In this document: positions 24,601-27,600 of the stretch, piece by piece
How positions within the stretch are numbered: the stretch's first letter is position 1
Layout of the letters: every line of letters starts with the position of its first letter
Assembly: GCF_001194135.2 (NCBI RefSeq)
Contig: NC_068988.1
Location: forward strand, 50,390,022-50,454,021
Origin: Octopus bimaculoides
Lineage: Eukaryota
DNA: 64,000 nt
Direction: 5' to 3'
Translations under genes and position numbers: made by a program
Notes under the pieces: model-generated
Databases searched by the model: none
Told to the model about the DNA's origin: nothing
What the model saw: only the letters and a program-made list of their open reading frames with translations

Positions 24601-27600
24601 TAATCTTGCAACAAACCAGCATCTCAACCAGGGAGGAATATATATATACCAGACCAACTTGGAAACTAGCCCTATACTCTTCACTGAGTAATGTGGACTA
24701 ACCTAAGCATCTACATTACAAACTAAGAAAGAGATTTTATGATGTTGCAAAGGACAGCATTATGTTCTTGATAGAATCACTGTTAATGGAGAACATCTCA
24801 TACTGAAAGATGGACTATAATTAACAGCGGTTTGAGGAAAAACCAAGTAGCTTATCAAACACTGAAACAGTATTCATTAAATGCAGGCTGTTGAAGTTCT
24901 CTATGGTAAAGGGTCCAGATATGATCTTGTACAGTTTGTGGAAGGGCTGTCTTAGCATCATTTTAGATCCCTGGAAAAATTAATGCACTGGCTCCTATAG
25001 TATTATTGATGGCAAGCCACAGCATACATAGATAGAAATGGGTCCCTAGACTGGTAAGGCCTCCAGGCAACTGCCTGGTGTGCCAGTGCCTTAGGGTGGT
25101 CCTAGTCTGTGGACTGACCATATCACACTTTCAAAAGCTGGTCTTGCCATCTATGAAATGTCACCCAGCTGAGAACTTTTTGTTCATTATGTACAAAGGT
25201 GTGCGCATCAATTTCTGGTTTAGAAATCCATTTTGGGTGAAGGTACAAGGATGGATTAGCTATTTGATGTGTTTCTTGACAAATTTCTTTTACAAAAAAA
25301 GGAAAATAATAATAGTTTACAACAAAATCCAGACCACATAGTCATTTGAAGAGGCATGGCAGAAAAACTGTCAAACATGTTGCGACGAGTATGTCTGCAA
25401 TGAGAAAGTGGTTGTGTCTGATAAAGTTGTATTGACCACTTTTATGTTTTATTCTTGTTTCATAATACTTACACTCACACATACGTACACATGCATACAG
25501 ACATACATACATACAAATATGCATTTGTGTAGAGATATGACTAATACACAGCTGTTTTAGTAACATGTATTTGTGGTGCATATATTTATATACATAGACA
25601 CATACACGCATACACCCATATATAACATTTGTACCTTAGTTTCATTTTAGATGATATGATGTAGCTTTTAGGTTTCTTTTATTTTATTTCAATTTTTGTT
25701 TGGGTTATTTTCTTTTTTCACACATTATCATGTTTTTGTTTCATTGTTGATGTGTATTGTCTCCCCTTGTTTGGCCTGTGTGAAATTCTAATGGCAACTT
25801 CCTTCTTTCCCTCCGTACTGCTGCAGTGGACACCTGAGCACAAGCAGTGACCTTGCTCTGTGCGGTTCTCAATCCAAACTCTCCTATCTGGCAGATATTC
25901 CGTAAGACATTCAGTTGCATGTTCTAAATGTAACCTGTCTACCTGTGCAAATCAAATCAAAAAAAAAAAAAAAAAAAAAAAAAAAAAAAAAAAAAAGAAA
26001 AGAAAAATAGTATATGTGTGCAAATGTGAATACGTATATATATATATATGTATGCTTGAATATATGTATGCGTTTATATACACACACAATTTTATGTATC
26101 TTGGTGTAGTATGTGTTAATGTTTGTGTGTGTGTGTATTATATGTATGTAATTTGAAGTAGTCTGAATGTGTGTATGCCTGCTGTTTATATGTATGTGTG
26201 CGTATGTATGTGTGTGTATATATACATATATATATGTATGCTTATGTGTGTGTGTGTATGTATGTGTGTATATATATATACATATATGTATGTATGTTTA
26301 TGTGTATGTGTATTTATGTGTGGGTGTGTACGTGTGTGTGTGCTTATATAAGATGATGTGTGTGTGTGTGTGTGTGTGTACATATATAAGATGATGATTA
26401 AGTGTGTGTGTATGTATGTATGGACATATAAGTATATGTGTATGTATGGATATCTAAATATGTGTATGTATGGGTATACAAGTATATGTGTATGTATGGA
26501 TATTTAAGTAAACGTGTGTTTATGTATATGTCTGTCTGTATAGTGTGTGTGTGTGTGTGTGTGTGTGTGTGTAATCTGCACCAGAATTAATGTTGTTCAT
26601 GTATGTGTATGTCATTGTTTTGTTGTTTTTATACTATTTTCATTATTCTTTTGATATGTGTTATTTCTACATATTTCTAGCAATTCAATTTTCATTCAGT
26701 TTATACATGCAGCTTCTAGTTTTTCAGCTATGCATGACTATTTTTTATTACTTACTAATTGCACTTGGAATATTTTTGCCCATCTATACTGTTAACTGTG
26801 TCTTTAATCATATAATTATATAATTCAACCAAATAACTGGTACCTAGCAGGAATGATGCAAAATTGTGCAGAACACTGCTAAGGTACATTCTGTTAGCAT
26901 GCTTGCATGTAGATATACCTCTAATTATGTTCAACACTTAAATATGTTGTTTGTTTTTTTATTATCATACACACCCTAGTAGTTTACACGATTAGAAGCC
27001 TCTTATGCTGGATGCCTTTTGGTTAATAAGCAAATACAGAACTACTATTAATCATCCTAACTGAAAGAAATAATTATTGTTGTTGCTGTTTGCTTCAGAT
27101 CTCCATTTTTTGTTTGTTTTTTGGGGTCTTTTTTTTTTTCTTTTTCTTTTTGATCCATTTTAGCTACTAAATTCAGAACATTTGAATGTCTTCTCCATTA
27201 CTTTGGAGTAGAAAAATGGTTCTTCCTTCTATATTTTGTTTTATTGTATTTGTTTTTTTTTTTTAGCAAATATCCATGTCAGTTTGTTTATTTGTAGTGA
27301 GAGCAAGTACTAGCCAAAAAAAAAAAAAAAAAAATAGCTGTGAATGCACTTCAAATTTTTGGAAAAGCTAAAACAAAATAATGAAACAAACACATACTGA
27401 TAAGCACAAGCACAAACTTAACACAGAAACATTAACAACAATACCTTCAACAACAACAGTAATTACCCTTTGATAATGTGGCCAACCACAAGGAAACACT
27501 AGACTGAACAAGGGTTACATTACAAAAGAGAGTACCTCCTTGCCCAACAAATTTATCCTAGAATGGATAAGGAAGACAGTAATATTTTGCTTTTCAAAGT

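Follow-up and report, generated by a model that had tools for sequence, protein, structure and literature searches.

The closest described counterpart of the locus considered here is exon 24 (E24) of the mouse and human latrophilin gene Lphn3 (ADGRL3), an alternative exon in the receptor's third intracellular loop whose exclusion moves coupling from Gs to G12/13, and ADGRL2 is spliced at the corresponding site (PMC10830413). Two further points of reference are provided by classes of regulated exon that are defined by their splicing factors. Exons dependent on the eMIC domain of SRRM4/Srrm234 carry, in flies as well as in mammals, a signature composed of a long AG exclusion zone, UGC near the 3′ splice site, a CU-rich tract and CUAAY, and the domain itself has been traced to the bilaterian ancestor (bioRxiv 10.1101/2021.02.24.432780). 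These are typically microexons, the median length in flies being 31 nucleotides (nt). Rbfox proteins, on the other side of the exon, promote inclusion from just 3′ of the donor. Here, we describe a 75-nt segment at positions 25827-25901 (+ strand) of a 64,000-nt stretch of the Octopus bimaculoides genome (contig NC_068988.1, positions 50,390,022 to 50,454,021; this whole stretch is referred to as the window), which is situated in a long intron of a latrophilin-type adhesion G-protein-coupled receptor (GPCR) gene. Judged from its sequence, the segment has about an even chance of being a real alternative cassette exon of this gene, and its inclusion would then probably be tissue-regulated, with neurons as the most likely place.

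The identity of the host gene follows from seven coding exons that were mapped on the + strand of the window, the assembled 259-residue product of which matches the seven-transmembrane (7TM) family Pfam 7tm_2 with an E value of 9e-60. Among solved structures, ADGRL2 (1.4e-38, 135 bits) and ADGRL3 (4.9e-37, 130 bits) are much closer to this product than ADGRL4 (4.9e-23), ADGRE1/5 (about 1e-22) and ADGRD1 (1.2e-20, 77 bits), and the gene is therefore assigned to the latrophilin-type adhesion GPCRs on the basis of its 7TM region, the extracellular domains being located outside the window; in addition, a KVRKEY motif after the seventh transmembrane segment (TM7) is shared. The intron in question (16581-35123, 18.5 kb) separates the TM5 exon from the TM6 exon and splits a codon of the third intracellular loop immediately ahead of TM6. 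The original prediction, which had placed the candidate exon in this loop, is thus in agreement with homology to ADGRL2 and ADGRL3, by which the intron falls at the ...I-K/G-W junction (here and below a slash within a sequence marks a splice junction) between TM5 and TM6. A distant animal homologue from a metagenome (L014) possesses an intron that interrupts the same codon, likewise in phase 2 (...LQNI-GC/gtacgt ... tag/T-ACG-TGG), which indicates that the TM5-TM6 intron is old, and this counterpart intron of 1.3 kb is without sequence related to the candidate.

The candidate exon and its splicing signals

The signals which the original prediction had named around its proposed exon were all located. 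A branch-site-like TTCTAAT is present at 25786-25792, with CTAAT inside it at 25788-25792, the pyrimidine tract consists of CCTTCTTTCCCTCCGTACTGCTGCAG at 25801-25826 and ends with CTGCAG at 25826, the exon-like segment measures exactly 75 nt, and the donor GTAAGA occupies 25902-25907. A codon is split between the two flanking exons, its AA being the last bases of the upstream exon (…AAG ATA AA/gtaagt, up to 16580) and its A the first base of the downstream exon (tttcag/A GGA TGG…, from 35124); the skipped form, in which 16580 is joined to 35124, reads ...STKEKIKGWIRAAW... across the junction. Upon inclusion of the segment the split Lys codon becomes Asn, the frame imposed by the upstream exon is stop-free up to a split Pro codon at the end of the segment, and the net gain is 25 residues, the 24 internal ones comprising six Ser, one Thr, one Tyr and one Cys, exactly as had been counted. 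The description of the surrounding sequence as a GC-rich non-repeat island was upheld with respect to composition, as GC content is 0.42-0.56 over 25750-25950 versus 0.06-0.32 in the microsatellite, T-rich and A-rich flanks, while its non-repeat character is seen at the scale of the 64-kb window, where a second copy of the island was not found.

The evidence that carries the assignment as an exon is the combination of regulatory motifs around it. The 3′ splice region of the candidate displays the full signature described for SRRM4/Srrm234 eMIC-dependent neural exons, in that it is AG-free for 153 nt upstream of the acceptor (the closest upstream AG ends at 25671), contains a CU-rich tract with pyrimidines at 15 of 15 positions, has CUAAU at about -37, and places UGCUGC directly before the AG. 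All four features together occur at just 2 of the 7,343 AG sites that the two strands of the window contain, the candidate being clearly the cleaner of the two, and at least two TGC within the last 16 nt are found in only 6 of 216 strong decoy acceptors. The other AG site with the four features, at 2918 (+) in the intron 5′ of the TM2 exon, has an AG-free zone of 113 nt, a single UGC and CUAAU at -23, and is followed by an A-run. On the donor side, the candidate resembles Rbfox-enhanced cassette exons, with a UGCAUG a few nt past the donor. This hexamer has a frequency of roughly one per 1.6 kb on each strand of the window, yet within the first 40 nt it follows only 42 of 1,132 comparable decoy donors (3.7%), and even GCAUG is absent from the 100 nt past the donors of all seven constitutive exons. 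The candidate's Rbfox-type motif is a single copy and a predicted site.

Preservation of the reading frame adds to this, as an in-frame open segment ending at a comparably good donor follows 7.1% of random AG sites, and one ending at a GTRAG donor follows 1.6%. When the rarities of motifs and frame are multiplied, the expectation falls well below 0.01 per intron, a product that is heavily discounted because the motifs were spotted after inspection of the site and some thresholds were self-chosen. The motif combination nevertheless lifts the candidate from an unremarkable sequence to what is probably a real, regulated splice unit. The earlier proposal of a regulated exon therefore stands in so far as regulatory signals are present and jointly rare. 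The addition of phosphorylation sites to loop 3, which it also proposed, is pure and unsupported inference from Ser/Thr content.

Alternatives to a cassette exon

The principal alternative is that the candidate represents an intronic pseudo-exon, in which a pyrimidine stretch, AG and GT dinucleotides and a brief open segment coincide by chance, and which is either unspliced or spliced as noise only. This is quite possible, its probability falling somewhat short of even. Like known pseudo-exons, the candidate stands alone as an AG...GT pair that encloses an open frame, far inside a long intron, and matrix scores do not separate it from decoys. Splice sites were scored with an approximate metazoan weight matrix, whose frequencies were taken from general knowledge and which serves for ranking only. 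By this measure the acceptor is strong, with a score of 10.9 bits that ranks third among the 1,102 AG sites of the intron and lies within the range of the gene's real acceptors, and the candidate comes first among the intron's 605 in-frame open AG..GT pairs.

Several findings nonetheless weigh against a real exon. The donor scores 3.2 bits and ranks 141st among 1,144 GT sites of the intron, and on its exon side it departs from the consensus (TCC). In 45% of introns simulated with a first-order Markov model in which regulatory motifs were not considered, an in-frame cassette as good or better arose, and the minus strand of the window contains 5 equal-or-better decoys per 64 kb, or about 1.4 per 18.5 kb; a rule-based count came to between 0 and 4 decoys per 128 kb at different stringencies. 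Three of the six frames are stop-free across the 75 nt, with open stretches of 77 and 60 codons running through the island on the minus strand, and the composition of the segment (GC 0.51, third-position GC 0.46) is richer than that of the gene's other exons (0.33-0.46 and 0.34, respectively). At 75 nt the candidate is also longer than typical eMIC-dependent exons and, unlike those of flies, which are located in short introns, it resides in an intron of 18.5 kb. Similarity to the vertebrate E24 peptide (NYEDNRPFI) was not detected either, as tblastn gave no match in the intron and the pairwise score was under the shuffle mean, and homology to E24 was rejected on these grounds. The rarity of the motifs overstates their significance, these being post hoc. 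By splice-site strength and frame alone, the candidate could thus be an ordinary pseudo-exon.

What argues for a real cassette exon over a pseudo-exon is the full set of regulatory motifs, which the decoys lack, that is, the coincidence of the four-feature acceptor with the downstream UGCAUG and a preserved frame, together with the position of the site in the one intron where vertebrate latrophilins carry a cassette.

A second alternative, which is improbable, accepts the acceptor as real and assigns it to another product, being either an alternative terminal exon that would truncate the receptor after TM5, or an exon of another, possibly non-coding, transcript. The strength of the candidate indeed lies on its acceptor side, the donor being mediocre, and a stop codon overlaps the donor such that, if the donor at 25902 is unused, the frame stops immediately (CCG TAA). 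A precedent is available in Drosophila Cirl, for which truncated adhesion-GPCR isoforms generated by alternative processing have been described (bioRxiv 10.1101/2023.01.11.521585). Against a terminal exon, neither AATAAA nor ATTAAA was seen in the sequence read between this stop and the run of 38 A residues (A38) further downstream, and that run belongs to the genomic sequence, where it has the look of an insertion of its own, while frame preservation and the downstream UGCAUG are better accommodated by a cassette exon.

A similarly improbable third alternative is that the island is a retroposed element or the body of a retrocopy ending in the A38 run (25959-25996), its exon-like features being incidental: the run is the longest homopolymer of the window, begins 58 nt 3′ of the segment on the same strand and follows a frame stop and a short tail, as would be expected of a retrocopy, but the direct repeats GTCTACCTGTGCAAAT (25937-25952) and GTATATGTGTGCAAAT (26010-26025) bracket the A-rich segment alone, and by enclosing only the A-run they speak against the island as a poly(A)-tailed retrocopy body, in addition to which the window holds no other island copy and neither a protein-family match, nor an RNA family, nor an unusual fold was detected. 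An origin of the island from a transposon or protein domain was likewise rejected, with no frame scoring above the protein-family threshold, as was a structured non-coding RNA such as a small nucleolar RNA or microRNA, with no Rfam match over 25780-25925 and a fold z-score of -0.21.

The surroundings of the candidate exon

The coordinates of the constitutive exons and of the elements at the candidate exon are collected in Table 1.

Table 1. Exons of the latrophilin-type gene mapped in the window and sequence elements at the candidate cassette exon, in order of position.
Feature	Position	Strand	Remarks
TM2 exon	6517-6619	+	
TM3 exon	13150-13300	+	
TM4 exon	15269-15335	+	
TM5a exon	15917-15983	+	
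TM5b constitutive exon (second half of TM5 and start of intracellular loop 3)	16486-16580	+	Donor GTAAGT; aligns with TM5 of ADGRL2/L3 (solved structures)
Branch-point-like CUAAU	25788-25792	+	About 37 nt 5′ of the AG; fits the CUAAY consensus (bioRxiv 10.1101/2021.02.24.432780)
CU-rich polypyrimidine tract CTTCCTTCTTTCCCTCC	25798-25814	+	Pyrimidines at 17 of 17 positions
UGCUGCAG, two UGC motifs abutting the acceptor AG	25819-25826	+	Closest upstream AG ends at 25671
Candidate 75-nt cassette exon	25827-25901	+	Stop-free frame and flanking splice signals
Donor GTAAGA, exon side TCC	25902-25907	+	Moderate strength
UGCAUG (Rbfox-type motif)	25916-25921	+	Begins 15 nt 3′ of the donor
TM6-7 constitutive exon (end of loop 3, TM6 and TM7)	35124-35292	+	
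Start-of-tail exon	36085-36210	+	

Immediately 3′ of the candidate exon, the 16-nt direct repeat at 25937-25952 and 26010-26025 is identical at 13 of 16 positions with a 10-nt exact core, and the bracketed segment consists of CAAATC, A38 and GAAAAGAAAAATA. As the repeats bracket only this A-rich segment, the A-run is considered an insertion of its own into pre-existing sequence, and 25937-26025 looks like a small separate insertion flanked by a target-site duplication, such as might result from an extremely 5′-truncated retroposition. A second candidate of the original prediction, 26851-26883 (+, 33 nt and in frame), was judged unlikely to be an exon, its acceptor scoring -0.2 with 9 of 15 pyrimidines and an AG one base upstream; its donor, GTACAT, is followed by two GCAUG at 14 and 22 nt past the donor. 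Elsewhere in the intron, a CT-rich low-complexity block at 22740-23350 (+) gives rise to spurious open frames of up to 189 codons and harbours high-scoring decoy acceptors at 23091, 22851, 23347 and 23125, which illustrates the ease with which pyrimidine tracts originate.

With regard to the remainder of the gene, the TM4 exon appears to employ an unusual donor (GCA/GTTAGT, 15336-15341, +) with T at +3, which is needed for the frame into TM5a (…YGTDR-H-CWLKID…), and no TM1 or GPS exon was found in 1-6516. Within 36211-64000 (+), 3′ of the exon that starts the tail, two unassigned matrix hits have the same phase (50986-51018 and 62268-62318). Runs of N representing assembly gaps are located at 33696-33705, 41292-41638, 58860-59334 and 61078-61179, the first of which lies between the candidate and the TM6 exon, and some sequence of the TM5-TM6 intron may therefore be missing.

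Repeats in the window include copies of a tRNA-related short interspersed element (SINE) at 44580-44720 (…GGTTTTGGGTTCAGTCCCACTG…CTTCTACTATAGCCTC…), which appear to resemble the abundant octopus SINE and would fit a cephalopod origin, with similar translated motifs near 14447-14710 and 52853-53067. A second SINE-like family is represented at 35490-35910, in the intron right after the TM6-7 exon, by a copy whose head is tRNA-like (…GGTTTCGATTCCCAGACCGG…) and whose tail is (CAA)n, and similar translated motifs are found near 24448-24700 and 47894-48190. Three open stretches on the + strand, 5295-5555, 51580-51798 and 53591-53764, contain motifs like GRPRGRPRMRCLENI… and …RRMKWLDTI…ESIMTLASDR… and look like putative C-terminal fragments of ORF2 proteins of non-long terminal repeat (non-LTR) retrotransposons.

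Relation to the vertebrate loop-3 exon and implications

The vertebrate cassette can be read from the isoforms of human ADGRL3, solved-structure entries for isoform 1 reading …GCLDNIKSWVIGA… and isoforms 3 and 4 reading …GCLDNINYEDNRPFIKSWVIGA…, and the difference between them is a nine-residue cassette, CLDNI[NYEDNRPFI]KSW, at the same junction as in the host, that of I with K-S-W (human) or K-G-W (host). The octopus candidate corresponds to ADGRL3 E24 and its ADGRL2 counterpart in being a frame-preserving cassette between the TM5 and TM6 exons (CLDNI/KSW in human, KEKI/KGW here), and in both cases inclusion changes the junction residue from Lys to Asn. The two differ in length, the vertebrate cassette being 27 nt as compared to 75 nt in octopus. 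Considering that they share no sequence similarity, independent origin at a shared intron is likelier than common descent if the exon is real, and the candidate, read from its sequence and position, is in that case a positional analogue of E24 and not a homologue. A derivation of the segment from the 3′ part of the TM5b exon through duplication, to which the endings ...KIK/ and ...DIP/ had drawn attention, was also rejected, as alignments of both DNA and protein were no better than shuffles.

Comparative searches returned no counterpart of the cassette itself. A protein database search with the spliced, cassette-containing loop retrieved only genomic TM6-7 fragments of other animals, none of them from the same or a closely related species and at no more than 69% identity even over the highly conserved TM6-7 exon, the 12 distant TM6-7 loci on metagenome contigs gave no match to the cassette patterns, and every tblastn match of the cassette peptide to the fetched homologue loci had an E value above 1. 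A literature search on latrophilin splicing in cephalopods gave nothing relevant.

If the candidate is spliced as a cassette exon, its inclusion would turn ...EKIKGW... into a form of the third intracellular loop that is 25 residues longer, and these mostly polar residues would be introduced at the docking site of G proteins, the cytoplasmic entry of TM6. From the cis-motifs it may be envisaged that an SRRM/eMIC-type factor acting on the UGC motifs beside the AG, and an Rbfox-type factor acting on the downstream UGCAUG, would promote inclusion. By analogy with ADGRL3 exon 24, the consequence may be an altered G-protein coupling or a loop-dependent regulation of the receptor. Modulation of coupling remains a guess, albeit one better grounded than phosphorylation because what has been published for the vertebrate counterpart is altered G-protein coupling, and not phosphorylation (PMC10830413).

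A broader proposition, which we consider unlikely, is that cephalopods and vertebrates independently evolved a regulated cassette in the same ancient latrophilin intron, the cephalopod one being driven by the SRRM/eMIC and Rbfox neural splicing machinery of bilaterians and tuning how a synaptic adhesion receptor couples to G proteins. Should the exon prove to be unexpressed, the segment would be an ordinary intronic pseudo-exon. In mammals, the loop-3 exon of latrophilin-3 sets the choice of G protein and thereby synapse formation. If the proposition is true, the octopus locus would represent parallel evolution of neural receptor splicing in two large-brained lineages and a concrete case of the parallel rewiring of neural splicing programmes, and the TM5-TM6 intron would constitute a hot spot for evolving signalling diversity in latrophilins.

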